DNA of 64,000 nucleotides from Leucoraja erinacea (taxonomy: Eukaryota). Numbering within the stretch: position 1 is the stretch's first letter; each line of letters starts with the position of its first letter. Positions 2,021 through 62,275 of the stretch are shown piece by piece. The DNA is taken from positions 41,416,001-41,480,000 of the forward strand of contig NC_073394.1 in the NCBI RefSeq assembly GCF_028641065.1, given 5' to 3'. A program made the position numbers and the translations under genes. The notes under the pieces are model-generated. The model saw only the letters and a list, made by a program, of their open reading frames with translations, was not told where the DNA came from and searched no databases.

Positions 2021-2162
2021 ATGGTGGCGGGGAAGGGTGCGGGCTGCGGCCGGACGGGGGATGTCTGGGGGCTGAGGGGCTGCTGCTCCTCTCCGGGAAC
2101 CCGGCTGCCCACCCTGGTACTGGCGCTGGTACTGGCGCTGGCGGGGCTGCTACCCGCCGCAG
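2021..2162 (+). CDS. NCR3LG1: Exon 1: signal peptide (MVAGKG...[17 protein letters not shown])
   Basis: Strong Kozak context gcaagATGG, hydrophobic core, phase-1 donor CAG|GTAACG. Confidence 0.85.
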
Positions 2163-33500: not shown

Positions 33501-36500
33501 TAATAATAAATAATTAATAAATAAATCTTAAGAGGAATAGATCGGGTGGACGCATAGCGTCTCTTGCCCAGAGTTGGGGGAATCGAGGACCAGAGGCCAA
33601 ACGTTTAAGGTGAGGGGGGTTTAATAGGAACTGAGAGGGGTAACTTTCTAACACAAACATTGCAATCAGAGGTAGTTGAGGCAGGGACTATTGCAATGTT
33701 TAAGAAACATTTAAACAGGTATTTGGATAGGATAGGTTTAGAGGGCTTTAGTGGACAAGTTGGGACAAAGGGCCTGTTTAAACACTGTATGACTATGACT
33801 CTTTGTCTTTGGGATGTAGGAAGAAACCCGCACGTTCACAGGGGGGAATGTGCAAACGCCACACAGACAGCACCCGTGGTCAGGATCGAACCCGGGTCTC
33901 TGGCGCTGCGCCACTGTGCCGTCCCTTCTCACTTCAAACTTTACACTAGATTTATTTGATTGTCTCTTTCACAACAAAGTTTCACGCTGAATAAATTAGT
34001 TTTATTTTTTACTGATGTTGAAAATAGACGCATTTGGATGTTCAGTTGTTTAAAATCTGCTTGGGTGAGACACTTAGTCAAAGATCACTGAAACAGGCCT
34101 TTCGGCCCAACTTGCCATTGTCAACCAAGGTGCCCCATCTAAACTAGTCCCACCTGCCCGCGATTGGCCATCTTCTATCAATCTATACTATTGACCACTT
34201 ACGGTCTGCGTTGTAACTAAATTTGCGCAAAAATGATCCCCCATAGCGCTACGATTGTTCGCCACCTTACTCACCATTCTCCTCAGCTGCAAGTCAAATA
34301 GGTTTTGTCCCGAACGGTGAAATATTCTGCGAGCAGGGATCCACACCACCCCTTCCCACATGCACCACCTCCCCTACCCCAACAACCCCCCACTCCCTCC
34401 TTCCCGTACACCCCCCACGTACACCCCCCTCCCCAACACCTCACCTCCCCTTCAACCCCACCCTTCCCTCACCCACCCCATCCCCCACACTCCCCCTTAC
34501 CACACATGCCCCTCCCCCCACCGCACACACACCCCCCCCTACTCCCACCATCCCCCCGTACCCCCACCATCCCCCCCCCCCCCCCCCCCCCACCTCCACT
34601 CCCATGAGGTTGGAGGAGGTGCAGGTGAACCTCTGCCTCAGCTGGAATGACTGCTTGGGTCCTTGGATGGAGTCGAGGGGGGAGGTAAAGCGACATGTGT
34701 AGCGTTTCCTGCGGTTGCAAGGGAAAGTACCAGAGGAAGGGGTGATTTGGGTAGGGAGGGACAAATTGACCAGGGAGTTGGTTCAGGTAATCCTTGCTTT
34801 CACCCTCCTTCCCCTTCCCTTCACTGCTCTCCCACAGCCTACTCTCTCCACATCTTCCTCCCTTTTTCCTGCCCCAACCCCCCACATCAGTGTGAAGAAG
34901 GGTCTCGATCCAAAACGTTTCCTATTCCTTCGTTCCATAGATGCTGCCTCACCCTCTGAGTTTCTCCATCATTTTTATCTACCTTTGTTTTGTCCAACAT
35001 CTGCAGTTCCTTCTTAAACATCAGGTTTAATTAAGCTCTTTTTTATTCTGCAGATTATGGCAAAAATGAAAATGATGTCAATGAAAAAGTCGATGAAGGT
35101 AAAAGTCTTCATTTCCAATAGTTACTGTATTTTGAATGTTTGCTTCAAGTAGAAATTTAGATCATTACACATGATCCAAATGTTTTCAAAACACAAAGTG
35201 CTGGAGGAACTCGGTGGCTCAGGCAGAATCTGGAAGGAATGTTTAGTTTAGAGATAGAGCTCATAAACAGGCCCGTCGGCCAACCGAGTCCGCACCGACC
35301 AACGATCACCACACACTAACAATATCCAATACTGTAGGGACAATTTATAATATAATATTTAGAGTGGGGGAGGTATCCAGAGAAACCCCTCGTGGTCATG
35401 GGGAATGTCCAAACTCCACACAGACAGCACCTGTGGTCAGGATGGAGCCCGGGTCTCTGGTGCTGTGAGGCAGCAACTCTACCGCTGCACCACTGTGCCG
35501 CCCGTTATCTCTTCAAACTTTACACTAGATTTATTTGATTGTTTCTTTCACAACAAAGTTTCATGTTGAAAGGAAATCGTAAAAATTGTAAAGAGCCATG
35601 GTTTTCAAGGGAAATTGGACACGGTTCAGAAAAAGAGGGAGATCTACAATAATTATAGGCAGCATGGAGTAAATGAGGTGCTTGAGGAGTATAAAGAATG
35701 TAAAAAGAATCTTAAGAAAGAAATTAGAAAAGCTAAAAGAAGATATGAGGTTGCTTTGGCAAGTAAGGTAAAAGTAAATCCGAAGGGTTTCTACCGCTAT
35801 ATTAATAGCAAAAGGATAACGAGGGATAAAATTGGTCCATTAGAGAGTCAGAGTGGACAACTATCTGCAGAGCCAAAAGAGATGGGGGAGATATTGAACA
35901 GTTTCTTTTCTTCGGTATTCACCAAGGAGAAGGATATTGAATTATGTGAGGTAAGGGAAACAAGTAGAGTAGCTATGGAAACTATGAGGATCAAAGAAGA
36001 GGAAGTACTGACACTTTTGAGAAATATAAAAGTGGATAAGTCTCCAGGTCCGGACAGGATATTCCCTAGGACATTGAGGGAAGTTAGTGTAGAAATAGCA
36101 GGGGCTATGGCAGAAATATTTCAAATGTCATTAGAAACGGGAATAGTGCCGGAGGATTGGCGTACTGCGCATGTTGTTCCATTGTTTAAAAAGGGGTCTA
36201 AGAGTAAACCTAGCAATTATAGACCTGTTAGTTTGACGTCAGTGGTGGGCAAATTAATGGAAAGAATACTTAGAGATAATATATATAAGCATCTGGATAA
36301 ACAGGGTCTGATTAGGAACAGTCAACATGGATTTGTGCCTGGAAGGTCTTGTTTAACTAATCTTCTTGAATTTTTTGAAGATGTTACACGGGAAATTGAT
36401 GAGGGTAACACAGTGGATGTTGTGTATATGGACTTCAGTGAGGCCTTTGACAAGGTTCCTCATGGAAGGTTGGTTAAGAAGGTTCAATGGTTGGGTATTA

Positions 36501-39500
36501 ATGGTGGAGTAGCAAGATGGATTCAACAGTGGCTGAATGGGAGATGCCAGAGAGTAATGGTGGATGGTTGTTTGTCAGGTTGGAGGCCAGTGACGAGTGG
36601 GGTGCCACAGGGATCTGTGTTGGGTCCACTGTTGTTTGTCATGTACATCAATGATCTGGATGATGGTGTGGTAAATTGGATTAGTAAGTATGCAGATGAT
36701 ACTAAGATAGGTGGGGTTGCGGGTAATGAAGTAGAGTTTCAAAGTCTACAGAGAGATTTATGCCAGTTGGAAGAGTGGGCTGAAAGGTGGCAGATGGAGT
36801 TTAATGCTGATAAGTGTGAGGTGCTACATCTTGGCAGGACAAATCAAAATAGGACGTACATGGTAAATGGTAGGGAATTGAAGAATGTAGGTGAACAGAG
36901 GGATCTGGGAATAACTGTGCACAGTTCCCTGAAAGTGGAATCTCATGTAGATAGGGTGGTAAAAAAAGCTTTTGGTGTGCTGGCCTTTATAAATCAGAGC
37001 ATTGAGTATAGAAGTTGGGATGTAATGTTAAAATTGTACAAGGCATTGGTGAGGCCAATTCTGGAGTATGGTGTACAATTTTGGTCGCCTAATTATAGGA
37101 AGGATGTCAACAAAATAGAGAGAGTACAGAGGAGATTTACTAGAATGTTGCCTGGGTTTCAGCAACTAAGTTACAGAGAAAGGTTGAACAAGTTAGGGCT
37201 TTATTCTTTGGAGCGCAGAAGGTTAAGGGGGGACTTGATAGAGGTTTTTAAAATGATGAGAGGGATAGACAGAGTTGACGTGGAAAAGCTTTTCCCACTG
37301 AGAGTAGGGAAGATTCAAACAAGGGGACATGACATGAGAATTAAGGGACTGAAGTTTAGGGGTAACATGAGGGGGAACTTCTTTACTCAGAGAGTGGTAG
37401 CTGTGTGGAATGAGCTTCCAGTGAAGGTGGTGGAGGCAGGTTCGTTTTTATCATTTAAAAATAAATTGGATAGTTATATGGATGGGAAGGGAATGGAGGG
37501 TTATGGTCTGAGCGCAGGTACATGGGACTAGGGGAGATTATGTGTTCAGCACGGACTAGAAGGGTCGAGATGGCCTGTTTCCGTGCTGTAATTGTTATAT
37601 GGTTATATGGTTAAAGGAGTTATATTTGTTACTGATGTTGTCAATAGATGATTTTGGATGTTCAGTTGTTTCAAATCTGCTTGGGTGTCATAGATCACGG
37701 GAAAAGGCCCTTCGGCCCAACTTGCCCTTGTCAACCAAGGTGCCCCATCTAAACTAGTCCCACCTGCCCGATTGGCCCATATCCCCCTAAACCTATCCTA
37801 GCCATGTTCCTGCCCAAGTGTTTAATACTCTGACTTTGTAAGTGCCAATTTGATTTGACTAATGTCAGCTTTAATACTAAGATTAAACGAGCTTACCAGT
37901 TTGAAGTTTGATCTTGATTTTATGAGGAGTTACGATGAGCGATTACGTGAAGAAGGGCCGTCCGTCTGCGTGCGCGTCAATCTTCAAAGCAGCGGTGTTA
38001 AATCACAGATAAAAAGAAGACCTGAGAATAGTAAGATTGAAGAAACTAGAACTTCCATGTGACCTTGATAGTATGAGGGTGGGAGTGGTGGGCACGTAAT
38101 CACTCATCGTAACTCCTCATAAAATCAAGATCAAACTTCAAACTGGTAAGTTCTCGTTTAATCTTACTATTTTACTTTGGAGTCACGTGAGTGACTACGT
38201 GAAGATTTCAAAGCTCTGTGATTTTACGCCGGTTACGAATCCAGGCGTCACACACTGAATGGATTGACCATGGATGCGTGTAAACAAGTCAAGTTTATTT
38301 GTCACATACACATACTAGATGTGCAGTGAAATGAAAGTGGCAATGCTCGCGGACTTTTGTGCAAAAGACAAACAACCAAACAAATTATAAACACAATCAT
38401 AACACACATATTCTTTTACATAATAAATAATGGAAGGAAAAACGTTCAGTAGAGTTAGTCCCTGGTGAGATAGGCGTTTACAGTCCGAATGGCCTCTGGG
38501 AAGAAACTCCTTCTCAACCTCTCCGTTCTCACCGCATGGCAACGGAGGCGTTTGCCTGTCCGTAGCAGCTGGAACAGCCCGTTGCAGGGGTGGAAGGGGT
38601 CTCCCATGATTTTATTTGCTCTGGAGTTGCACCTCCTGTTGTATAGATCCTGCAGGGGGGCGAGTGAAGTTCCCATAGTGCGTTCGGCCGAACGCACTAC
38701 TCTCTGCAGAGCCTTCTTGTCCTTGGCAGAGTAATTCCCAAACCAGTTGGTAATATTTCCGGACAAGATGCTTTCCACCGCCGCTGCGTAGAAGCACTGG
38801 AGGATCCTCGGAGACACTCTGAATTTCCTCAATTGCCTGAGGTGGTAAAGGCGCTGCCTTGCCTTACTCACGAGTGCTGATGCGTGTGATGCCCACGTCA
38901 TATCCTCGGAGATGTGGACTCCCAGATCATTAAAGCATTCAGACATTACGTAGTTAAGTAAAGAAACTGATGCTTTAAATGAAAGAAAAGTTTTTTAAAA
39001 AGTTACCCCTTCCAACCTTGGGGGGGAAACTAAGGGACAGAACTTAAAATGGTACGTGCAAACACCCCCAGTCCGGTTATGGGTTTGTTATAAAACCGGT
39101 GGACCGTTATTTCATTCGTCCATCCTGCAGCCACTAGGATGTCGTCAAGGGGCACGTCCATAGATCTTGCTGCCGACGTAGATGCAGCCCTGGTGGAGTG
39201 AGATTTAACCATATAAATGTTTACTCCTGCTACCGCCATTACCTCTTTTGACCATCTGGAGATGGTTTGAGTTGACACCTTTTGGTGTGTTTTTTTTATG
39301 GCTGATGAGGACCGATTGTTCTGAGCCTCCGTAACTCTCAGATAGCGGTGTTAGTATGTTACCACCCACACAACCGTTGGTCCTCTGGATATGCCAAGAA
39401 CTGGATCTCCATCCCTGGCATTCCTGGCCTGCTCTGTTTATCAGGTTCCTGATTAGGAATGTTATGTTGTTCATATTGGTGGTCATGTAGTCCAACCGTA

Positions 39501-42500
39501 GCTTTTGCAATGTCTGGACTCTGTCAGCATACCACCTTCAGGGTTAGTTATAGGCGCTCCCCACTGTCAAAGTAGGATTTGTACCATGCTCACATCCCAT
39601 GTGTCAGTGTACCTTTGCCTTGGAGGTCTTAAATTGTAAATTCCCTTCATGAATTTTGTTGTAAAGGGGTGCGTTCCATATAACAATTACAGCACGGAAA
39701 CAGGCCATCTCGACCCTTCTAGTCCGTGCCGAACACATAATCTCCCCTAGTCCCATATACCTGCGCTCAGACCATAACCCTCCATTCCCTTCCCATCCAT
39801 ATAACTATCCAATTTATTTTTAAATGATAAAAACGAACCTGCCTCCACCACCTTCACTGGAAGCTCATTCCACACAGCTACCACTCTGAGTGTAAAGAAG
39901 TTCCCCCTCATGTTACCCCTAAACTTCAGTCCCTTAATTCTCAAGTCATGTCCCCTTGTTTGAATCTTCCCTACTCTCAGTGGGAAAAGCTTTTCCACGT
40001 CAACTCTGTCTATCCCTCTCATCATTTTAAAAACCTCTATCAAGTCCCCCCTTAACCTTCTGCGCTCCAAAGAATAAAGCCCTAACTTGTTCAACCTTTC
40101 TCTGTAACTTAGTTGCTGAAACCCAGGCAACATTCTAGTAAATCTATCGAACTGTGCCCTGCTTCCGGCATCAGATAGGAGGAGAGTGCGCCTCTGGCAC
40201 TATAGATGCACTATAACTTAGTTTATAGTTATAGTACAGTTAATAGGAACTCCAAGACATCCGTTATCCGAACTGTGTTGTATTTGTTCGGACAGTCCTA
40301 TGCCTTGAAATGGCCTCCTCAGAATCTGCAGACTAACAAGTTATACGTTCATGTAGTGGATGATTGCTCCCTGTAACTGGGTTCACTAGGAGGTCCCTGC
40401 TCTTGGGTACAGCCATTACTGGCTGGACTATAATTCCCAACATTTTTGGGGACCAGGCTTGAGTAGGCCAATCTGGCACTACCAATATGCCTGTGGCTTA
40501 GTCTTGCTTGATTTTTGTCAAGCATCGGTTTGTGAGACAAATTGGCGGAAAGTATACATAAACATTCCTCCCCAATTGAGGGAGAAAGCATCCACTGCCT
40601 TGCTCCTGGATCCAGCTCGCAGGACACATATCTGGGTAACTAATGGGTAGTCTAGAAGCAAACGGATCAACATCTGGTATGCCAAATCGTGTATTTATTT
40701 TGTTAAATACTGCCTGATTCAACATCCATTCTGTGTTGTTATTAAACATTCGGGATCCAGCATCTGTCACCGTGTTATATCTACCTCGTAGATTTCCCAA
40801 ATATTCCTCTCGATTCACCAGTGCCAAATGAGGTTCGACAATCTGTCATAAGATACAGATTTTACACCACCCTTGTTAATGGATATGTGACACCACAGTG
40901 GTGTTATCAATCTGAATTTGAACAAGCACCGGTTGTATATTGCTACAGAAACCCTTGAGTCCATATTGTGCCCCCAACAATTCTGGGTAATTGATTCCAT
41001 ATGTTGGGGAATTACAGACTCCTGCTCATTCCATCTGCCCCCACAGCTCTAGACTGTGTTGGTGGCTCCCCTTAGCCGCTGGCATAGGTCTGAAGAACCC
41101 TCAATGGCTTTCAAGCAAAATTTCCCTGAGCTGTCTCCCATTCGTTATCCACCATAGTTATTCAACAATGGCCTCTGCTGACAATCCAGTTTTGCCAATT
41201 CGGCCTGCATGTAATCTGAGTGTTCGTTCCTTTGCTTGCTGTAAGTTCTGGTAATGCAAAGGCCCGTACTGCTGGGAATGCAGCTACTATTTCCCAATTA
41301 CACTCGCTGTTTGCCTGATAGATGGCTAGTATTTGACTATCAGGTCATAGCAGGCTTGATTTATATAGTCATTTGCCCCTAGGCAAAGTCACCAACATAT
41401 TTACTGTTTTTGATAGTAAATTCTAGGTAATCAATTACCCTTGTAGGTGTCAATTTTGATTTAACTGGATGGATGAGGTAAACAATTCTATCAAACAGGG
41501 TTTTGGTTTGCTTGACTGATGCTTCTGCCAATTCTTGGTGAGTCCAAAAACAAAAATGTCCTCCAAATATGCCATTACCATGTGGTTTTGAGACCTTTGT
41601 AGTCCCAGAATTGGTTTCCGTAGTTTAGTCAATAGTCTAGGAGCTGATGAAAACCCATTTGGCAGAGCCATGCCATCCAGTTAAACTTCAAATATCTCCT
41701 GTTCTTAATGAATAGACACCGAATACTATGCATCTTTGAGGTCGATGCATGCCATGTGACCATTTTATAGGAAGCTCCTATAAAACAGTAGTTAGACCGT
41801 AACAAAAAATTGCTGTTTCTAAAAGTCTGTACTGCACAAATGAGTTAAACCTGGATGAAGTGACATCCTCCATCTGTCACCTGTCCTGGAAGGCAATCCT
41901 GCCCAAAATACTGGGCCTGCCTTGAAGACAATTCCGGTCCAAGTTCCAAGTCTGCTTGGAACCTATGTATGTTGTGCAGTAAAAAATAATCACATGTTGT
42001 TATCTGTTTTTTAAAACCAGATCTGAAATTCATGTTATTATCATTTTGAACAAAAACACAAGAGTAAATTACCAACATGTAACTGGTCCACAATCCCTTG
42101 TTTCAGTAAACCCAGACCCACCTACCTTCATGGCTACCGGTGGTCTTGTGGTAAGCCCAAAGGCCCCTGATGCGGGTTCCTTTTCGCTCCTTGATTGGGA
42201 GTAGGACTGGTAGGGAGTGTGGATTCCATGTTTCTCCTGACCTCTGCTTGGGTCTTGGTCTGAAAACCTCATCATACTGAGCCTGCCTTGTCGGACAATT
42301 CTGGCCATAATTCTGAGTCTGCCTTGAAAGACGACTGATCATATTTCCGTGCCCAGCTTTCAAGCTACCACCGGCTTCAGTGAACTGCTTACCCCCTATG
42401 GAGGTGTGGGGTGTGTTGTCGCCTACTGACGAAGTTTTGCTTGTCGTTGGTACCTTGATTGATCCGACAGCTTTTGCTTCCTTCTTCTGGTCTTACCTGA

Positions 42501-45500
42501 AGATAGGATTCGACGGCTGGTTTCTCCAAAGTCACCCTGATAGCGCTGTTCCCTTGCCGGCATTTGTGCGGATATTCTGCCAACTGCTGTCTCTTGAGGC
42601 CATATGCATGTGCTTCAGTATGTTCATACTTTAATTCGAGATCAGTTACCTACTGATCTCGAAGCCAAATTTCGTTTGAACGTTATGTGAGGTTCAAATG
42701 ACAAATGAATGGTATTGTATAGTATTGTAATTCAAGATCAGTTACCTACTGATCACTCACACTCCTCTCCATTGAGAGTGAGATTTGTAGGTAGCCCTGA
42801 AAACAGGGGCTGCCGCAGGCCCCTGAGGATACCTGCGCTGACATGGCCCCTCCAGCGGGCCTAAATGAGATTCTTGCTTTGGGTCAGACTGAAACTGACA
42901 GTGAATGCTCCTCTCCTCAGAGCAGGAGACATTTTCTAGATCTCTATCCAGGGAAGCACCCAGTGGAACCTGGGTGATTGCAGAAGTATTTCTTTTCTTT
43001 TGTGCTTATTATTTATTTTATGTAAAGCTTTTTGGTGCAAGTTAACTTAAACAGTGCTATATAAGTAAAAGTTACTTACTTCCTTTCTTCTGCTTGTCCC
43101 TGGGAAGGTCCCCCCCCCCCCCCCCCCCCCTGCTTTTGTACTCTGATTCAGAGTGCTTTCTTCCATATGTACTTCCCCCTCCAATGGGGAAGACATTGGG
43201 TTGCCCCATTATGCGAGGCTCCCGGTACTGCCTGCTGCTGTAGGCCCCGGGCTGACACAGCTCTCTCCTTAGAGCAGGTCATTGTTGGAGCAACTTCTCC
43301 AAAAGTTGCTCCTATGTGGGAGAGTCGTCCTCAGACGCTCTCCGTTGAGGGAAGGTATCCCTTTCCCTCCCCGGACTCTTCTGAGTCAATGGGTTGTTTG
43401 ACTTGCGGGTGGATTTTCCCGTACTGCAGGACCCCCAACGGAGCTCTCCTCCTGCAACAAGTCTCCTGCCGGCTCAGCTGCCGGCGCTGTGTCGGGAAAC
43501 AGTTATGGTCTGAACGCAGGTGTATGGGACTAGGGGAGAATACGTGTTCGGCACGGACTGGAGGGGTCGAGATGGCCTGTTTCCATGCTGTAGTTGTTAT
43601 ATGGTTATATGGTTAAAAACCGTAGCCCGCTACTGGGAAATGCTGCGGTCTTCGGCAGCCGACTTCCCCGCGGACCGTATCCTCGACATCTGGGCCCCTA
43701 CAAAAAGTTTCAAGCCCGAAAGAACGAGGTAAGTGATTCAACTTTCCTTACCTGCCCATCCTAACGGTCTGGAAGAACGCAGTGCCTCTCCAGTCCATCG
43801 CGCGTTGCGTTCAGACGTAATGACGCGCACGCAGACGGACGGCCCTTCTTCACGTAGTCGCTCACGTGACTCCGAAGTAAAATTAAAGGTAGACAAAAAT
43901 GCTGCGGAAACTCAGTGGGTGAGGCAGCATCTATGGAGCAAAGGAATAGGCGACGTTTCGGGTCGAGACCCTTCTTTAGACTGATGTGGGTGGGGCGGTG
44001 TGGCGTGGAAAAAAAGGAAGATGTGGAGACAGTAGGCAGTGGAAGAGCTGGAAGGGGAGGGGAAGGAGGGTGAATTCAAGGACTACCTGAAATTGGAGAA
44101 GTCAATGTTCATACCGCTGGGGTGTAAACTACCCAAGTAAAATATGAGGTGCTATTCCTCCAATTCGCTCTGGACATGGAGGAGGCCCAGGACAGAAAAG
44201 TGTGATTTGGAATGGGAGGGGGAGTTGATGTGCTGAGCCACCGGGAGATCAGGTTGGTTAATGCGAACTGTGTGGAGGTGTTGGGCGAAGCGATCGACAA
44301 GCCTGCGCTTGGTCTCACCGATGTAGAGTAGTTGACACCTGGAACAGCGGATGCAATAGATGAGGTTGGTGGAGGTGCAGGTGAACCTCTGCCTCAGCTG
44401 GAAAGACTGCTTGAGTCCTTGGATGGAGTCGAGGGGGGAGGTAAAGCAACAAGGGAAAGCACCAGAGGAAGGGGGTGATTTGGGTAGGGAGGGACGAATT
44501 GACCAGGGAATTGGTTCAGACAGTCCTTGCTTTCGCCCTCCTTCCCCTCCCCTTCAAAGCTGTCCCACAGCCTACTCTCACTGCCTCTTCCTTTCTTTTT
44601 CCCGCCCCAGCCCCCCACATCAATGTGAAGAAGGGTCTCGACACAAAACGTTCCCTATTTCCTTCGCTCCATAGATGCTGCCTCACCCGCTGAGTTACTC
44701 CAGCATTTTTGTCTACCTTCGTTTTTTCCAGCATCTGCAGTTCCTTCTTAAACATCAGGTTTAATTAAGCTCTTTTTTTATTCTGCAGATTATGGCAAAA
44801 AAGAAAATGATGTCAATGAAAAAGTCGATGAAGGTAAAAGTCTTGATTTCCAATAGTTACTGTATTTTGAATGTTTGCTTCAAATAGAAATTTAGATCAT
44901 TACACATGATCCAAATGTTTTCAAAACACAACGTGCTGGAGGAACTCGGTGGCTCAGGCAGAATCTGGAAGGAATGTTTAGTTTAGAGATAGAGCTCATA
45001 AACAGGCCCATCGGCCAACCGAGTCCGCACCGACCAACGATCACCACACACTAACAATATCCAATACTCGAGGGGCAATTTATAATTTTTACCGATGCCA
45101 GTTAACCTCCAAATCTGCACGTGTTTAGAGTGGGGGAGGTATCCGGAGAAACCCCACGTGGTCATGGGGAATGTCCAAACTCCACACAGACAGCACCTGT
45201 GGTCAGGATGGAGCCCGGGTCTCTGGTGCTGTGAGGCAGCAACTCTACCGCTGCGCCACTGTGCCGCCCGTAATCTCTTCAAACTTTACACTAGATTTAT
45301 TGGATTATTTCTTTCACAACAAAGTTTCATGTTGAATAATGTAGTTATATTTGTTACTGATGTTGACAATAGATGAGTTTGGATGTTCAGTTGTTTCAAA
45401 TCTGCTTGGGTGTCATAGATCACGGGAAAAGGCCCTTTGGCCCAACTTGCCCTTGTCAACCAAGGTGCCCCATCTAAACTAGTCCCACCTGCCCACGATT

Positions 45501-48500
45501 GGCCCATATCACTCTGAACCTATCCTATCCATGTTCCTGCCCAAGTGTTTAATACTCTGACTTTGTAAGTGGCAATTTGATTTGACTAATGTCAGGTATA
45601 ATTAAAGGGAGACAAAAATGCTGGAGAAACTCAGTGGGTGAGGCAGGATCTATGGAGCAAAGGAATAGGCGACGTTTCGGGTTGAGACCCTTCTTTAGAC
45701 TGATGTGGGCGGGGCAGTGTGGCGGGAAAAAAAGGAAGATGTGGAGACAGTAGGCAGTGGAAGAGCTGGAAGGGGAGGGGAAGGAGGGTGAAAGCAGGGA
45801 CTGCCTGAAATTGGAGAAGTCAATGTTCATACCGCTGGGGTGTAAACTACCCAAGTAAAATATGAGGTGCTGTTCCTCCAATTCGCTCTGGACATGGAGG
45901 GGGCCCAGGACAGAAAAGTCGGATTCGGAATGGGAGGGGGAGTTGAAGTGCTGAGCCACCGGGAGATCAGGTTGGTTATTGCGAACTGTGTGGAGGTGTT
46001 GGGCGAAGCGATCGACAAGCCTGCGCTTGGTCTCACCGATATAGAGTAGTTGACACCTGGAACAGCGGATGCAATAGATGAGGTTGGAGGAGGTGCAGGT
46101 GACCCTCTGCCTCAGCTGGAAAGACTGCTTGAGTCCTTGGATGGAGTCGAGGGGGGAGGTAAAGCGACAAGGGAAAGTACCAGAGGAAGGGGGCGATTTG
46201 GGTAGGGAGGGACGAATTGACCAGGGAATTGGTTCAGACAGTCCTTGCTTTTGCCCTCCTTCCCCTCCCCTTCAAAGCTGTCCCACAGCCTACTCTCACT
46301 GCCTCTTCCTTTCTTTTTCCCGCCCCACATCAATGTGAAGAAGGGTCTCGACCCAAAACATTTCCTATTTCCTTCGCTCCATAAATGCTGCCTCACCCGC
46401 TGATGAGTTTCTCCAGTTTCTCCATCATTTTTATCTACCTTTGTTTATTCCAGCATCTGCAGTTCCTTCTTGAACATCAGGTTTAATTAAGCTCTTTTTT
46501 ATTCTGCAGATTATGGCAAAAACGAAAATGATTTAAATGAAAAAGTCGATGAAGGTAAAAGTCTTGATTTCCAATAGTTACTATATTTTGAATGTTTGCT
46601 TCAAATAGAAATTTAGATCATTACACATGATCCAAATGTTTTCAAAACACAAAGTGCTGGAGGAACTCGGTGGCTCAGGCAGAATCTGGAAGGAATGTTT
46701 AGTTTAGAGATAGAGCTCATAAACAGGCCCGTCGGCCAACCGAGTCCGCACCGACCAACGATCACCACACACTAACAATATCCAATACTCGAGGGACAAT
46801 TTATAATTTTTACCGATGTCAGTTAACCTCCAAATCTGCACGTGTTTAGAGTGGGGGAGGTATCCGGAGAAACCCCACGTGATCATGGGGAATGTCCAAA
46901 CTCCACACAGACAGCACTAATTAAAGGGAGACAAAAATGCTGGAGAAACTCAGGGGGTGGGGCAGCATCTATGGAGCAAAGGAATAGGCGACGTTTCGGG
47001 TCGAGACCCTTCTTTAGACTGATGTGGGCGGGGCGGTGTGCCGGGGAAAAAAGGAAGATGTGGAGACAGTAGGCAGTGGAAGAGCAGGAAGGGGAGGGGA
47101 AGGAGGGTGAAAGCAAGGACTACCTGAAATTGGAGGTCAATGTTCATACCGCTGGGGTGTAAACTACCCAAGTAAAATATGAGGTGCTGTTCCTCCAATT
47201 TGCTCTGGACATGGAGGAGGCCCAGGACTGAAAAGTCGGATTCGGAATGGGAGGGGGAGTTGAAGTGCTGAGCCACCGGGAGATCAGGTTGGTTATTGCG
47301 AACTGTGTGGAGGTGTTGGGCGAAGCGATCGCCAAGCCTGCGCTTGGTCTCACCGATATAGAGTAGTTGACACCTGGAACAGCGGATGCAATAGATGAGG
47401 TTGGAGGAGGTGCAGGTGAACCTCTGCCTCAGCTGGAATGACTGCTTGGGTCCTTGGATGGAGTCGAGGGGGGAGGTAAAGCGACATGTGTAACGTTTCC
47501 TGCGGTTGCAAGGGAAAGTACCAGAGGAAGGGGGCGATTTGGGTAGGGAGGGACGAATTGACCAGGGAATTGGTTCAGACAGTCCTTGCTTTCGCCCTCC
47601 TTCCCCTCCCCTTCACAGCTGTCCAACAGCCTACTCTTTTCGCCTCTTCCTTCCTTTTTCCCGCCCCAACCCCCCACATCAATGTGAAGAAGGGTCTCGA
47701 CCCAAAACGTTCCCTATTCCTTCGCTCCATAGATGCTGCCTCACCCGCTGAGTTTCGCCAGCATTTTTGTCTACCTTCAATTTTTCCAGCATCTGCAGTT
47801 CCTTCTTAAACATCAGGTTTAATTAAGCTCTTTTTTATTCTGCAGATTATGGCAAAAAAGAAAATGATGTCAATGAAAAAGTCGATGAAGGTAAAAGTCT
47901 TCATTTCCAATAGTTACTGTATTTTGAATGTTTGCTTCAAATAGAAATTTAGATCATTACACATGATCCAAATGTTTTCAAAACACAAAGTGCTGGAGGA
48001 ACTCGGTGGCTCAGGCTGAATCTGGAAGGAATGTTTAGTTTAGAGATAGAGCTCATAAACAGGCCCATCGGCCAACCGAGTCCGCACCGACCAACGATCA
48101 CCACACACTAACAATATCCAATACTCTAGGGACAATTTATAATTTTTACCGATGCCAGTTAACCTCCAAATCTGCACGTGTTTAGAGTGGGGGAGGTATC
48201 CGGAGAAACCCCACGTGGTCATGGGGAATGTCCAAACTCCACACAGACAGCACCTGTGGTCAGGATGGAGCCCGGGTCTCTGGTGCTGTGAGGCAGCAAC
48301 TCTACCGCTGCGCCACTGTGCCGCCCGTTATCTCTTCAAACTTTACACTAGATTTATTGGATTATTTCTTTCACAACAAAGTTTCATGTTGAATAATGTA
48401 GTTATATTTGTTACTGATGTTGACAATAGATGAGTTTGGATGTTCAGTTGTTTCAAATCTGCTTGGGTGTCATAGATCACGGGAAAAGGCCCTTTGGCCC

Positions 48501-51500
48501 AACTTGCCCTTGTCAACCAAGGTGCCCCATCTAAACTAGTCCCACCTGCCCACGATTGGCCCATATCACTCTGAACCTATCCTATCCATGTTCCTGCCCA
48601 AGTGTTTAATACTCTGACTTTGTAAGTGGCAATTTGATTTGACTAATGTCAGGTATAATTAAAGGGAGACAAAAATGCTGGAGAAACTCAGTGGGTGAGG
48701 CAGGATCTATGGAGCAAAGGAATAGGCGACGTTTCGGGTTGAGACCCTTCTTTAGACTGATGTGGGCGGGGCAGTGTGGCGGGAAAAAAAGGAAGATGTG
48801 GAGACAGTAGGCAGTGGAAGAGCTGGAAGGGGAGGGGAAGGAGGGTGAAAGCAGGGACTGCCTGAAATTGGAGAAGTCAATGTTCATACCGCTGGGGTGT
48901 AAACTACCCAAGTAAAATATGAGGTGCTGTTCCTCCAATTCGCTCTGGACATGGAGGGGGCCCAGGACAGAAAAGTCGGATTCGGAATGGAAGGGGGAGT
49001 TGAAGTGCTGAGCCACCGGGAGATCAGGTTGGTTATTGCGAACTGTGTGGAGGTGTTGGGCGAAGCGATCGACAAGCCTGCGCTTGGTCTCACCGATATA
49101 GAGTAGTTGACACCTGGAACAGCGGATGCAATAGAATAGGGTGGAGAAAGTGCAGGTGAACCTCTGCCTCACGTGGGAAAGACTGCTTGGGTCCTTGGAT
49201 GGAGTCGAGGGGGGGGGGAGGTTAAAGCGACAAGGGAAAGTACCAGAGGAAGGGGGCGATTTGGGTAGGGAGGGACGAATTGACCAGGGAATTGGTTCAG
49301 ACAGTCCTTGCTTTTGCCCTCCTTCCCCTCCCCTTCAAAGCTGTCCCACAGCCTACTCTCACTGCCTCTTCCTTTCTTTTTCCCGCCCCACATCAATGTG
49401 AAGAAGGGTCTCGACCCAAAACATTTCCTATTTCCTTCGCTCCATAAATGCTGCCTCACCCGCTGAGTTTCTCCATCATTTTTATCTACCTTTGTTTATT
49501 CCAGCATCTGCAGTTCCTTCTTGAACATCAGGTTTAATTAAGCTCTTTTTTATTCTGCAGATTATGGCAAAAACGAAAATGATTTAAATGAAAAAGTCGA
49601 TGAAGGTAAAAGTCTTGATTTCCAATAGTTACTATATTTTGAATGTTTGCTTCAAATAGAAATTTAGATCATTACACATGATCCAAATGTTTTCAAAACA
49701 CAAAGTGCTGGAGGAACTCGGTGGCTCAGGCAGAATCTGGAAGGAATGTTTAGTTTAGAGATAGAGCTCATAAACAGGCCCGTCGGCCAACCGAGTCCGC
49801 ACCGACCAACGATCACCACACACTAACAATATCCAATACTGTAGGGACAATTTATAATTTTTACCGATGCCAATTAACCTCCAAATCTGCACATGTTTAG
49901 AGTGGGGGAGGTATCCGGAGAAACCCCACGTGCTCATGGGGAATGTCCAAACTCCACACAGACAGCACCTGTGGTCAGGATGGAACCCGGGTCTCTGGTG
50001 CTGTGAGGCAGCAACTCTACCGCTGCGCCACTGTGCCGCCCGTGATCTCTTCAAACATTACACTAGATTTATTTGATTATTTCTTTCACAACAAAGTTTC
50101 ATGTTGAATAATGTAGTTATATTTGTTACTGATGTTGTCAATAGATGAGTTTGGATGTTCAGTTGTTTCAAATTTGCTTGGGTGTCATAGATCACGGGAA
50201 AAGGCCCTTTGGCCCAACTTGCCCTTGTCAACCAAGGCGCCCCATCTAAACTAGTCCCACCTGCCCGATTGGCCCATATCCCCCTAAACCTATCCTATCC
50301 ATGTTCCTGCCCAAGTGTTTAATACTCTGACTTTGTAAGTGCCAATTTGATTTGACTAATGTCAGGTTTAATTAAACTCTTTTATTCTTCAGATAATGGT
50401 AAAGTAGAAAATGATGTCAGTGAAGAAGTCAATAAAGGTAAAAGTCTACATTTCCAATAGTTACTGTATTTTGAATGTTTGCTTCAAATAGAAATTTAGA
50501 TCATTACACATGACCCACATGTTTCCAAAACACAAAGTGCTGGAGGAACTCGGTGGGTCAGGCTGCATCTGCAGGGAATGTTTAGTTTAAAGATAGAGCT
50601 CAGAAACAGGCACTTTAGCCCACTGAGTCCGCACCGACAAACAATCACACATACTAACACTATCCAATACTCCAGGGACAAATTATAATTTTTACCAATG
50701 CCAATTAACCTCCAAACCTGCACGTCTTTGGAGTGTCGGAGGAAACTGGAGAAACCCCACGCAGTCACAGGGAGAACGTACAAACTCCGTACAGACAACA
50801 CTCATAGTTAGGATCCAACTAGGATCTCTGGCACTGTACAGCAGCACCTCTACCGCTGCGTCACTGTGCCGCCCGAATAGATAGACGCGCTTTGGGTTGG
50901 GAACCTTCTTCAACCTCAGAGTCTAACGAAGGTCAGACGGATTGTAGGGAGGAGGAAAATGCTGTAAAAGAGGAGTGGCAGGAGAAAGCCTGGCAGGTAG
51001 TAGGCTGTCACAGGTGAGGGTGCTTTTTGATAAGCAGAAGGTGGAGATAAAAACAATCCTTTTGTGTTACACCTTCTGTATCAGCCCATTACCTGCCAGG
51101 CTTTGAACTGCCCCTCCTCTCATCCAGCATTCCTCTCCCCCTACAATCAGTGAAGAAGGGTCCCGTACCAAAACATCACCTATCCATAATCCCCTCGATG
51201 CTATCAGACCCGCTGACATACTCCTGCACTCTGTCTTTTTTTTGGTACGCGAGTGTCTGATTCACCATGTTCATAAGTATCTAGAAAGGGGAAAGTTAGT
51301 CCAGGGGAGTCTCTTTGTAGTGGATATAATATTTTTATGCATTTTCATTAGTGAAGCTTGAAGGTTTGAAGCTAACGTAGTTATTTTAGAAATACAGTGT
51401 GGAAACAGACCTTTCAGCACATTAAGTCTACGCTGACCAGTAATCACCCGTACACTAGTTCTATACGTTACTCGAGGGACAATTTACATGAAAGCAATTA

Positions 51501-54500
51501 ACCTACAAACGTGCACATATTTGGAGTGCAGGACAAGCTGCACGTGGACAAGCTGACAAGTGGACAAGCTTTGCCCTTTGAGAATAGGGAAGATTCAAAC
51601 AAGAGGACATGACTTCAGAATTAAGGGACAGAAGTTTAGGGGTAATATGAGGGGGAACTTCTTTACGCAGAGAGTGGTGGCGGTGTGGAATGAGCTCCCA
51701 GGTTCATTGGTATCATTTAAAAATAGTCATATGGATCGAAGGGAATGGAGGGTTATGGTCTCAGGGCGCATGGACTTGTAGGGCAGAGATGGCCTTTTCG
51801 TGCTGTAATTGTTATATGGTTATATTTTTTCCCTGTTGCCACGTGGTCACAGGGAGGAACTCCATCCAGACAGCACCCAACCTTGAACCCAGTCTTTTTA
51901 GGGCTTGCTTAAATTCCCTGTTTGCCAGGTGGTCATTTAAGAGCGTTTGGTTGCCAATGCGTGCGATAATGTGCTCGGACGAAGTGCGTAGTTAACAGTC
52001 AGAATTATGCTCAATGAAGCATTCACATATTATGTTCAAGAAGGAACTGCAGATGCTGGAAAATGGAAGGTAGACAAAAGTGCTGGAGAAACTCAGCATC
52101 TATGGAGCGAAGGAAATAGGCAACGTTTCAGGGTTTCAACGTTGCCCATTTCCTTCGCTCCATAGATGCTGCTGCATCCGCTGAGTTTCTCCAGCACTTT
52201 TGTCTACATTCACATATTATTTCTGCTTTAAATAACTCACAAACTAAACATATTCACCAATCAAGACATGATAATCCCACAATGACATGCAGCAAAATTA
52301 TAATACAATACCTCAACTCTTTTTACACATTGCAATTAATACAATTTCTATTAGTTCTTTCCACTTCCAAACAAAAATGTGGTCGGATTATTCAGCATAT
52401 GATCAACCTATGTCAATAAATCCTGGACCATGGTAACATATATGCTTAACCATGTACACTACAGGTTGATGCAAGCATGTTTTCTGTGAAGGACTGAAAA
52501 TGACCATAACATGGCCATAGCATGGGTCGTTATTGCTATTGGTACAGAAACACTCTCGCTTCCCACATAATTTATCCACAACAAAATATACAGGTTGCAA
52601 GGAAATTTATAAAGGCATTTTATGATAATAGCTGTTAAAACCGACTATACCCATCTGACAGGTTAAACATTACACTAACTTACAAGAGATGGCCAAAGGA
52701 CATAACTGCAGCAAATGGCGGGCGGGGGGGGGGGGGTGGTTGAGAAGGCAATCGATGCGGAATGGATGGATTGAGGCAGGTAAATTAGTATGTGTTGGTT
52801 GGAGTAGGGAAAATTGTGGGGGAGAGATGTCAGTGGTGTTGAATGGGGGGTTCAGTACAGGATGAATGGGGGGGTTCAGTACAGGATGAATGGGAGGATC
52901 AGTACAGGATGAATGGGGAGTCAGTCAGTGACAGGATGAATGGGTGATCAGTACAGGATGAATGGTGGATCAGTACAGGATGAATGGGGGGCTCAGTACA
53001 GGATGAATGGGTGATCAATTAAAGATGGATGGGGAGATCACTACAGGATGGATGGGGAGGGATTGGTGCAGGGTAAATGGGTGAGTCAGTACGGGATGAA
53101 TGGGCGGATCAGTGCAGTATGAATGGGGGGAGAAGTGCAGGTTGGATGGGAAGGGGGGGTCAGTACAGGATGAATTGGGGGACCAGTGTAGGATGGATGG
53201 GGGGGGTGCCAGGAGAATCAATGTGAGGTGGGTAGGGTGATGAATAGTTTGGGGGGGTGGGGTAGATGGGGAGGGGAGGACATGGGATGTCAGTGAGGAC
53301 TGAATAGAGGAGGAGGGAATGGGGATCAGTGCGGGATGGAGAGGAGGGGTCCCAGGATAAGAGGGTGGAGGGGGTCGTACAAGAGAGAGAGGGGGGAGGG
53401 GGCAGAGGAGGTGGGGAGGAAGGAAGATCAGCGCTCCTCGGACAACATCGCCCCGCTGCCTTGGCCGTCCCTGTCCATCGCCAAAGTGCCGCTGATCCCC
53501 TCCTCCACCAGCGGACTGGAAGGTGCGGGGCTGAGCGGTGCAGCTCAAAGATCCTATAGCTATAGGATCTTTGGTGCAGTTGCTTCAGACGGCGGATGGA
53601 GGCCTCCGCCTCCGCCTCCCCCTCCCGGCCTTGGCGTGAGAGAGGGGTTGTTTTGAAAAGGGCCGTTGGCGGATTTGCAGGCAGCCGTCGTTATCAGGAC
53701 GATAGCGGCTGGCTGCTTACAAATCCACCAAAGGCCCTTTACAAAACAACCCCTCTCTCACGCTGAGGCCGGGAGGAGGGAGGGAGGAGGGAGGTTCCTT
53801 CCACTGGGTGGGGTGCGGGAGGATGAGGCGATGGAGCCGCTATCGCCGCTGTTCGGGGCCCGTCATTCGCTTCGACTCTTCGCCACCACGCACCCAGTAT
53901 CTTTGCCCCACAATCAAAGATACTAGAGGAATACAGCCGCCGCCGCCGACACAAAACGTCACGTTTCTATTCTCCAGAGATGCTGCCTGACCCGCGGAGT
54001 TACTCCAGTTTTTGCGTCTATCGGTATAAACCAGTATTTGGGGGCCAAGCCGGGCAAAATGAGTCGGCATTTAGGTTGCCCGGCGGCACTTGGAGTGGTC
54101 AATGGCACCCGGGCAACCGTTAATTTCGAGCCCTGTGTAAGGTAGCAACTCTACCGCTGTGCCAGTGTTGTCCTGAAACTGCTATTTGAAGGATTTTGAT
54201 GAATCTTTTGAAGATTATATGTTATTCTATGTGCATGATTTTCCATATCCACCCAAATGCAACTATTTAGATGGAAAAAAATCGGTTTAGGTTTATTGTT
54301 GTCATATGTACCAAGGTATAGTATTAAGCTTTATTTTGCCTGCTATCCAAACAGATAAAAAAAAAACATACATATATACAATCAGTTGAAACAGAAATAA
54401 AACAGATAGAGTAAAGGGGAAGATACAGAGTGCAGGATATAGTTCTCAGCATTGTGGCGCATCAGTTACAGAGACAAAGTCCAATGTCCATGATAGGGTA

Positions 54501-61079: not shown

Positions 61080-62275
61080 ATAACCATATAACAATTACAG
61101 CACGGAAACAGGCAATCTCGGCCCAACAAGTCTGTGCCCAACAACTTTTTTTCCCTTAGTCCCACCTGCCTGCACTCATACCATAACCCTCCATTCCCTT
61201 CTCATCCATATGCCTATCCAATTTATTTTTAAATGATACCAATGAACCTGCCTCCACCACTTCCACTGGAAGCTCATTCCACACCGCTACCACTCTCTGA
61301 GTAAAGAAGTTCCCCCTCATATTACCCCTAAACTTCTGTCCCTTAATTCTGAAGTCATGTCCTCTTGTTTGAATCTTCCCTATTCTTTTTAATTTTTTAA
61401 TTTATTTTTTAATTCAATTTAATTGTCATTTGGACCCCTTGAGGTCCAAACGAAATGCCGTTTCTACAGCCCCCCCCCCCATGTCAGAGTCAAAGTCAAA
61501 GCCCCCGGCTGGCGATGGCGATTGTCCCGCGGCCATTAAAGCCACGCCGGGTGGTGCAAGGTCGCACACCGGGTCTTGGTGTTAGAGCCCCCGGCGTGCG
61601 CTCGCAGAGTCCCGCGGCCATTCCAAGCCGCGCGGGGCGGTGATGTCAGGCCCCGCTCCAGGAGCTCTTCAACCCCGCAACTCGGGTGGGAGAAGTCGCT
61701 GTTGAAGGAGCCCTGAAAAGCGGTCTCCCTCCAGGGACCCGCGGGCTCCCGGTGCCGCCGTCCGCCAGACCCGCAGTTGCAGCCTCCGAATCTCCGAAGG
61801 TCGGGCCGCAGCAGCAGCAGCGCTCCACCACCGCTCCACCCGCTCCGGACTCGGCCAGCTCCGCGACGAGGTGAGTCGTCGGCACCAGAGTCCCCGGTCT
61901 TCTCCTGTTGGAGGCCGCTCCATATTGCAGCCCCAACCGTGCAGGGAGAGATTTAAAAGTTACCCCCTCCCTCCCACCCCCCACACACACACACACACCC
62001 CAACAAAAAATAACAAAAACTACATAAAAACATAGACAAAAATAATAAAAACGCGGACGGGCTGCAGAGGCCGCTGCTGACGTGAGTCGCGCCGCCTACC
62101 GGATCTCAAAGGGAAAAGCTCACCGCTCTCAAAGGGAAAAGCTTGTCCACATCAACTCTGTCTATCCCTCTCATCATTTTAAAGACCTCTATCAAGTCCC
62201 CCCTTAACCTTCTGCGCTCCAGAGAATAAAGACCCAACTTACTCAACCTATCTCTGTAACTTAGTTGTTGACTTA
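61080..62275 (-). mobile_element. CR1 3' fragment split by a GC-rich non-autonomous element (about 61386-62103)
   Basis: CR1 tail at 61080-61385 continues at 62104-62275. The insert has a 3' hairpin tail (ttggacc..ggtccaa) similar to that of element 339-1365. Confidence 0.7.

Follow-up and report, generated by a model that had tools for sequence, protein, structure and literature searches.

A 64,000-nucleotide stretch of Leucoraja erinacea DNA (contig NC_073394.1, forward-strand positions 41,416,001 to 41,480,000; the window, with positions counted from its first letter) holds six putative exons of only 45 nt, arranged in tandem between 35054 and 50437. The locus raises the question of whether such short pieces are really spliced into a protein and, if so, what a segment built from a variable number of them would contribute to it. 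The six pieces are real exons that are already modelled in RefSeq. They belong to the gene LOC129705966, whose protein XP_055505903.1 (isoform X1, 1303 residues) was identified by a region search that started from an Amblyraja protein query. The reading that we favor, with a probability of about 0.7, is that the micro-exons are individually skippable cassette exons encoding an acidic spacer that can be tuned by splicing and by duplication, and not a docking array.

The micro-exons are located on the + strand at 35054–35098, 44789–44833, 46510–46554, 47846–47890, 49561–49605, and 50393–50437 and are numbered 1 to 6 in that order. Each comprises 45 nt (15 codons) in phase 1-1, with a pyrimidine-rich tract (at least 14 of 20 positions), a CAG acceptor, and a GTAAAAG donor. 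The earlier note had read six phase 1-1 exons with these tracts, CAG acceptors, and GTAAAA donors directly from the letters, and a pattern search recovered all of them within the range that it gave. On the + strand of the window, the pattern [CT]AG plus 45 nt plus GTAAAA has seven matches, six of which are the micro-exons; the seventh, at 8840–8884, is unrelated, arises by chance, and has no counterpart in the annotated protein. The flanking exons, 29620–29931 and 55285–55586, are also in phase 1. Because the micro-exons are symmetric, any subset of them can be spliced with the frame unchanged. Five of the six acceptors (micro-exons 1 to 5, for example 35049–35053) read TGCAG, and that of copy 6 reads TTCAG; a UGC just before the AG resembles the intronic enhancers of SRRM4-dependent micro-exons, a likeness that may be due to chance.

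A strict scan was also carried out, in which candidates had to show at least 14 pyrimidines in 20 positions, a YAG acceptor, agreement with the donor consensus at 7 or more of 9 positions, phase 1-1, and a frame that stays open for 21–150 nt. Between 29932 and 55284, it returned six candidates, which are exactly the six micro-exons. Over the whole window, the + strand yielded 10, comprising the six micro-exons, the transmembrane exon, two fragments of genuine exons, and one candidate with no explanation (61769–61870); the - strand, which served as background, yielded six. Since background candidates occur at a few per 64 kb, splice signals alone are no proof of exons. Furthermore, the units are near-identical tandem copies, and the six exons are therefore not independent, so that their anatomy amounts to one or two observations.

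The annotated protein and RNA reads provide evidence of another kind. Window exons were translated and searched one by one, rather than as a joined spliced model, and all 15 translations are colinear in XP_055505903.1. That of micro-exon 1 occurs once, at residue 1115, and micro-exons 3, 4, and 5 are likewise present. The unit encoded by micro-exon 2 is identical to that of micro-exon 4, and Amblyraja isoform X1 contains this 15-residue sequence too; micro-exon 3, which is of a Leu type, encodes the same unit as micro-exon 5. Micro-exon 6 encodes an older, diverged unit that is present in all eight Leucoraja isoform sequences examined. In isoform X1, the linker between the residues SLKLP, at the end of the upstream exon, and the terminal domain consists of the six units in genomic order together with a split-codon Glu, giving 91 residues; the spliced product that had been read from the letters is this linker, already annotated. 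Its composition is E19 D17 N16 K14 V11 G6 Y5 L2 S1, with a net charge of -22 and no Cys or Pro. EF-hand loops, caspase sites, YxxΦ sorting signals, and CK2 sites were considered by eye, and none of the consensus sequences as we know them fits the repeat.

That the micro-exons are used in mRNA is confirmed by RefSeq proteins that contain them and by sense-strand RNA reads of a related skate that cover micro-exons 5 and 6 at roughly the depth of the terminal exon. RNA run X23 (polyA, paired, raw reads) and contig sets X1, X2, and X13 were aligned to 49550–55549; among the 24 runs listed, only X23 is on record as RNA, and contig sets X1, X2, and X13 were guessed to be RNA. At micro-exon 5 (49584 and 49586), X23 has 50 reads, with 46 first mates on the - strand and 4 on the + strand, and at three places in micro-exon 6 it has 20–24 reads, with 18–22 first mates on the - strand and 2 on the + strand. 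On the terminal exon, there are 16–21 reads at 55296–55377 (first mates, 16–21 on the - strand versus 0–2 on the + strand), 12 at 55437, and 4 at 55506. This bias of first mates to the - strand is the pattern that a + strand message would yield with the usual stranded protocol. From the comparable depths, it seems that most transcripts with the terminal exon include micro-exon 6 as well, plus about two more units. A 386-nt contig of set X2 matches 55283–55549 with 2 other letters in 267; the match stops at the acceptor, 86 letters of the contig continue beyond it, and its depth of 4.47 over the terminal exon recurs on micro-exon 6. Both X2 contigs at the place of micro-exon 5 are of the Val type, with a depth of 11.9. 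A 450-nt contig of set X13 aligns to 55342–55549 and differs there at 2 letters; the 23 letters ahead of the match are unmatched, and the break falls within the terminal exon and not at its acceptor, which could reflect another junction or a contig artifact. The listed joints and most of the aligned sequence are transposon. An origin of the micro-exons as exonized pieces of transposon was rejected by inspection of the read depth near the exons, which is far under that of the neighboring transposon bins.

The number of units varies among the annotated isoforms of each species and also between species. The eight Leucoraja isoform sequences include four with six units (X1 and X7–X9, which differ at the N terminus), one with five (X2), and three with four, and the four-unit forms represent three different subsets (X3/X4, X5, and X6). 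In Amblyraja radiata, isoform X1 has four units, and X2 and X3 have three, each dropping a different one. The stingray Hemitrygon akajei has four 15-residue units of another sequence in the same place (DKPDKQGGSNRAIGE twice, DNVDKKDGSNRAKSE, and DNAVNEDDSNKATSE) and has isoforms with three units in which the second or third is absent. In Rhinoraja longicauda, where units were counted in 3 of the 11 isoforms, there are eight that alternate between DCGKIENDVNGGVDE and (A)VCGKIENDVNEEVDE, with seven in one isoform. Several Rhinoraja sequences (P0062, P0072, P0078, P0080, P0081, and P0074) differ by a single Ala at the start of one 16-residue unit or another (AVCGK versus VCGK), which is the signature of NAGNAG-type tandem acceptors in every copy. 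The suggestion in the earlier note that the number of repeats could change by exon skipping or copy number is thus upheld as far as annotated skipping in four species and differences between species are concerned, the maximum counts being 6 in Leucoraja, 4 in Amblyraja, 8 in Rhinoraja, and 4 in Hemitrygon. In sawfish, electric ray, catshark, chimaera, and coelacanth, the linker that leads to this terminal domain is short or non-repeated and mostly acidic, and tetrapod relatives have Ser/Thr-rich linkers there; a variable low-complexity linker precedes this domain in relatives from chimaera to alligator. As judged from these comparisons, the 45-nt symmetric linker exon is at least as old as the common ancestor of skates and stingrays and has multiplied separately in several lineages.

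In Leucoraja, the array itself is young, and copies 1–5 were duplicated recently. Micro-exons 2–6 lie in a tandem array of genomic units at 44360–50875 (+ strand), delineated by repeat families D1–D15 and their pairwise identities. The start-to-start spacings of the six micro-exons are 9735, 1721, 1336, 1715, and 832 nt. The genomic units are ∼1.3–1.7 kb long, and a 300-nt core, introns included, is 97–100% identical among copies 1–5 and 82% identical for copy 6. A two-unit period of ∼3057 nt is also apparent, and the identity of exon 2 with exon 4 and of exon 3 with exon 5 fits the duplication of a two-unit block of this size. The large distance of 9.7 kb between micro-exons 1 and 2 results from ∼8 kb (35571–43880) that is absent from the other units. 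This segment begins with a 2041-nt insertion in the intron of unit 1 (35571–37611, + strand), which is delimited by the end of family D7 (35570/45336) and the start of family D6 (37612/45337). The insertion contains an uninterrupted frame of 638 codons (35615–37531), labeled by eye as reverse transcriptase-like, and looks like a young element.

Within the units, the exon is not the best conserved part. Copies 1–5 have only two variable codons, which read N/K/N/K/N and V/V/L/V/L. Between copy 6 and copies 1–5, 8–11 of the 45 exon positions differ, as compared with 4–6 of the first 100 intron nt and ∼12–13% of the next 200, and 7 of the 8 differing codons are residue-changing. For copies 6 and 4, the identities are 37/45 in the exon, 96/100 in the first 100 intron nt (50438–50537, + strand, after micro-exon 6; the same stretch follows every micro-exon and is better kept than the exon), and 175/199 in the next 200 nt. 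The difference in divergence between the exon and the first 100 intron nt gives Fisher p values of 0.004–0.011 across comparisons, with 0.009 for copy 6 versus copy 4. The peptide thus evolves about as fast as the distal intron, and the donor-proximal intron is conserved; the latter could reflect either a splicing element that serves such short exons or a tract of gene conversion.

The position of the linker in the protein is defined by the exons on either side of the array, all of which are on the + strand. The product of LOC129705966 is, from its predicted domains, a B7-H6-like protein with a V-C1-(V-C1)-TM arrangement, where TM is a transmembrane segment, followed by several C1-type immunoglobulin (Ig) domains. 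In the window, a V-set exon (7004–7339) and a C1-set exon (9220–9540), both assigned from Pfam matches and splice reading, precede a transmembrane exon (13219–13332) whose translation is a hydrophobic anchor found in XP_055505903.1. This exon is a frame-neutral cassette of 114 nt in phase 1-1. C1-type exons follow at 18085–18528, 21822–22199, 23240–23539, and 28362–28694; for the third of these, the RefSeq protein has three residues more, and the real donor may be at 23548. The C1-set Ig exon immediately upstream of the linker (29620–29931; C1-set E value, 5.3e-13) matches at residue 1011 of XP_055505903.1 and ends in a phase-1 donor, CAG|gtatgt. The terminal exon (55285–55586), identified by splice reading and by its match in XP_055505903.1, has a phase-1 acceptor and encodes 99 codons and a stop. 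Across the family, some 650–940 residues of C1-type Ig domains lie downstream of the anchor.

The hydrophobic anchor is present in 51 of the 53 family proteins and isoforms examined, the exceptions being a partial catshark model and isoform X6 of Hemitrygon (XP_072905590.1, P0045, named hemicentin-1-like), which is without exactly the 38 residues that match the transmembrane exon. The anchor is retained in every one of the 22 skate isoform sequences (8 from Leucoraja, 3 from Amblyraja, and 11 from Rhinoraja). Of 22 proteins considered for a count of NxS/T sequons, 2 were under the threshold and were excluded; the other 20, which have a clear anchor, were counted, and expectations were obtained by shuffling. 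Before the anchor, 52 sequons are seen versus 37.5 expected and, after it, 89 versus 95.6; the only sequon column kept in at least half of the sequences is in the ectodomain. Because the linker is beyond the anchor and sequons there are at chance level, the Ig tail and linker are most likely cytoplasmic, although this is not proof, and the frame-neutral nature of the transmembrane exon limits the force of the argument. The earlier note had placed the linker between cytoplasmic Ig domains; its location between Ig domains after the transmembrane exon stands, and the cytoplasmic side is plausible.

Under the reading that we favor, the six symmetric exons together encode a very acidic, low-complexity spacer of 61–91 residues, which separates the last C1-type domain from the terminal Ig-like domain and lies beyond the anchor, most likely in the cytoplasm. 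From its composition, the spacer is probably unfolded. The array would grow and shrink by unequal recombination between the ∼1.3–1.7-kb units, including the 3.06-kb two-unit block, so that each skate lineage would acquire its own number and flavor of units. We infer that what matters in the spacer is its length and charge, perhaps along with the recurring GKxENDV core, and that the presence of the tyrosine is incidental. What the data show is that the exons exist, are included in mRNA, and are skipped in annotated isoforms, that species differ in their units, and that the duplication is recent.

Several points weigh against this reading. All 18 of the 18 skate units share the core GKxEND[V/L], a constancy that may point to a role for the sequence itself and not just to a spacer. 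The high proportion of residue-changing codons (7 of 8) would fit weak constraint on a spacer and would also fit no function at all. Disorder is judged from composition only, and Gnomon isoforms that differ among near-identical exons can reflect ambiguous placement of reads. As to the RNA, X23 comes from a related skate and not from Leucoraja erinacea, as indicated by five fixed differences in ∼265 nt of the terminal exon (four of them residue-changing, with one of the resulting changes common to Amblyraja), and the RNA nature of contig sets X2 and X13 is a guess. Splicing was deduced from piece ends, depth, and strand, since exon-exon junction rows are not among the listed joints. In addition, the Leu-type letters of micro-exons 3 and 5 occur in none of the 50 X23 reads at micro-exon 5 (49584 and 49586) and in no X2 contig; with Val-type reads only, it is the RefSeq models alone that attest the use of the Leu-type exons 3 and 5.

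The same data can be read as the record of an array with no function, in which a tolerant linker exon was recently copied by unequal recombination and its copies are included or skipped at random. The 97–100% identity of copies 1–5 extends through their introns and so gives no sign of selection, the differences between units are almost all residue-changing, and the unit sequence of skates is completely different from that of the stingray; in sawfish, electric ray, chimaera, and coelacanth, a short or non-repeated linker suffices. We nevertheless consider this explanation rather unlikely because Leucoraja, Rhinoraja, and Hemitrygon expanded the array separately and each retained a 45-nt symmetric exon, because the invariant skate core that counts against a pure spacer counts here against the absence of any role, and because the better preservation of the first 100 intron nt, relative to both the exon and the distal intron, suggests that splice control has been maintained. 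A quite different proposal would place the linker outside the cell, in a secreted isoform without the anchor, where its tyrosines would be sulfated in the Golgi and the Cys residues of Rhinoraja would link chains to one another in the manner of an antibody hinge. In its favor, the transmembrane exon can be skipped with no change of frame, the annotated stingray isoform that is without exactly this exon would be a secreted all-Ig protein, and the human IgG3 hinge offers an analogy. Tyrosine sulfation usually occurs at sites with Asp at -1 and nearby acidic residues, a context that the units share. On the other side, every skate isoform sequence from the three species keeps the anchor, sequons beyond it are neither enriched nor conserved, and several of the domains beyond it, when the exon translations were read by eye, are without the second disulfide cysteine, which makes this proposal very improbable.

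The multi-phosphotyrosine docking segment that the earlier note had proposed does not hold up well. It would be a cytoplasmic array of VDEDYG sites for Syk/ZAP-70 or Src-family kinases with a valency set by splicing. The location of the segment after the anchor, with chance-level sequons, fits the cytoplasm. At position 2, five of six Leucoraja units and three of four Amblyraja units carry a Tyr that is preceded by Asp at -1 and by further acidic residues, and a single Tyr in an acidic context is found in the catshark linker (DGTYENI). In Shah et al. 2016 (PMC5089863), which concerns human kinases whose preferences may differ from those of skate enzymes, ZAP-70 is described as strongly preferring Asp at -1, which would favor the units, and as severely impaired when a Lys or Arg is present at any position within seven residues; Lck has no requirement for Asp at -1 and is intolerant of Lys or Arg at positions +1 to +3. 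Every unit Tyr has Asp at -1 and also Lys at +2 and -5, with a further Lys at +3 in units 2 and 4, and would thus be in conflict with the rules given there for both kinases. Moreover, the Tyr is not kept; the last Leucoraja unit and the last Amblyraja unit have Asn at position 2, all eight Rhinoraja units have Cys there, and the four Hemitrygon units have Lys or Asn. Set against the conserved GKxEND[V/L], this variation makes the Tyr position the least conserved of the first nine. We know of no SH2 motif that is matched by pY-G-K-K/N. From these sequence features, we regard the docking array as improbable. A related idea treats position 2 as the working residue of a splice-tunable multivalent array, as a phosphorylatable Tyr in the rajids and a reactive thiol in Rhinoraja; we hold it to be about as doubtful. 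If it were true, splicing and unequal recombination would set the number of intracellular signaling or cross-linking sites of a B7-H6-like receptor.

The splice- and duplication-tunable spacer has counterparts in other proteins. Small symmetric exons in variable number encode an unfolded segment between Ig-type domains in the muscle-specific domain of NCAM and in titin PEVK, where the arrays are old and the units diverged; the skate array differs in belonging to an immune-type V-C1 receptor gene and in having five near-identical recent copies among its six units. The closest known case for comparison would be the hinge exons of human IgG3. The repeated IgG3 hinge exons also have 45 nt and encode 15 residues. 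According to PMC4202688, this hinge is encoded by up to four duplicated exons, one common exon and one to three copies of a second type, and its length differs between allotypes. In both systems, short tandem-duplicated exons set the length of a linker, and copy number varies; the IgG3 exons lie between C1-set domains, and the skate array, tandem copies of one short exon, has a C1-set neighbor upstream and an Ig-like one downstream. The IgG3 hinge is rich in Pro and Cys, extracellular, disulfide-bridged, and variable between alleles, whereas the skate units are acidic, have no Pro and have Cys only in Rhinoraja, follow the anchor, and are individually skipped in annotated isoforms. The Leucoraja linker, with no Cys or Pro and a position after the anchor, is therefore not a hinge of the disulfide-bridged extracellular kind. 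The Leucoraja linker may also be set beside LAT and the tails that carry immunoreceptor tyrosine-based activation motifs (ITAMs), which it would resemble as a probably cytoplasmic and unfolded segment with several tyrosines in an acidic context and Asp at -1, as in the ZAP-70 substrates described in PMC5089863. The skate segment differs from them in that its Tyr is not conserved, Lys falls in the range that excludes ZAP-70 and Lck, and no SH2-type motif was recognized.

As in B7-H6/NCR3LG1, a V-set and C1-set ectodomain is followed by a transmembrane segment; the skate protein differs in its long C1-type Ig tail past the anchor. To our knowledge, human B7-H6 has no such tail. The affiliation of the terminal domain is indicated by phmmer (HMMER), which found 40 relatives of the terminal exon. 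The match is C-terminal in most of them, with further stretches on internal Ig domains, and it is on account of the latter that the domain is called Ig-like, since Pfam is blank; three of nine open reading frames tried (18123–18539, 32842–33219, and 55233–55586) have no Pfam match. The nearest cluster is Amblyraja radiata LOC116984368. Relatives in skates, rays, and chimaera carry the RefSeq name "uncharacterized," and those in alligator are named natural cytotoxicity triggering receptor 3 ligand 1. A sequence search of the PDB with the terminal exon gave no match at E values up to 1, and a word-index protein search with this exon alone gave no candidate, an uninformative outcome because only proteins of 55–173 residues were covered. 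An ESM Atlas search with residues 850–1052 of one family protein (P0064) returned only generic C1-set clusters, with a best score of 0.92.

Three further features of the gene were observed. The open reading frame at 2021–2389 (+ strand) encodes the signal peptide used by isoform X8; isoform X1 has a slightly different leader and an additional V-C1 pair, both outside the window, which indicates that a leader-V-C1 module was duplicated upstream and is alternatively used. What looks like a relic Ig-domain exon is present at 32830–33216 (+ strand), with 63% identity over 105 residues (E value, 6e-38) to residues 898–1002 of Rhinoraja P0077, the Ig domain directly before the micro-exon linker in that species. 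The first half of this frame is nearly identical to the Rhinoraja domain, and the second half is degraded; the exon is used in none of the Leucoraja or Amblyraja isoforms examined, in which SLKLP joins DYGK directly. Finally, the transcript-derived Logan contig protein P0071 (270 residues), which matches 18085–18528 and 21822–22199, has ∼45 unrelated residues after 22199 and then ends; this could represent either a short alternative tail or intron retention, with loss of all distal Ig domains and of the linker.

The micro-exons are already annotated, and the protein family is unnamed and apparently unpublished within the literature searched. Full-text literature searches, with supplementary files outside their reach, found no paper on LOC129705966 or its exon array, and in the available part of PMC10751288, B7-H6 is named only in a reference. 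The value of the finding is modest, and the more unusual feature of the gene is the presence of C1-type Ig domains past the anchor. The array nonetheless offers a clean and datable case of a linker that has been lengthened by very recent tandem exon duplication and is probably trimmed by splicing, with independent occurrence in several skate and ray lineages in a little-studied family of receptors with Ig domains beyond the anchor. If the length or the motif of the linker governs the reach or binding of the terminal domain, the number of units would be an easily measured handle on that function.

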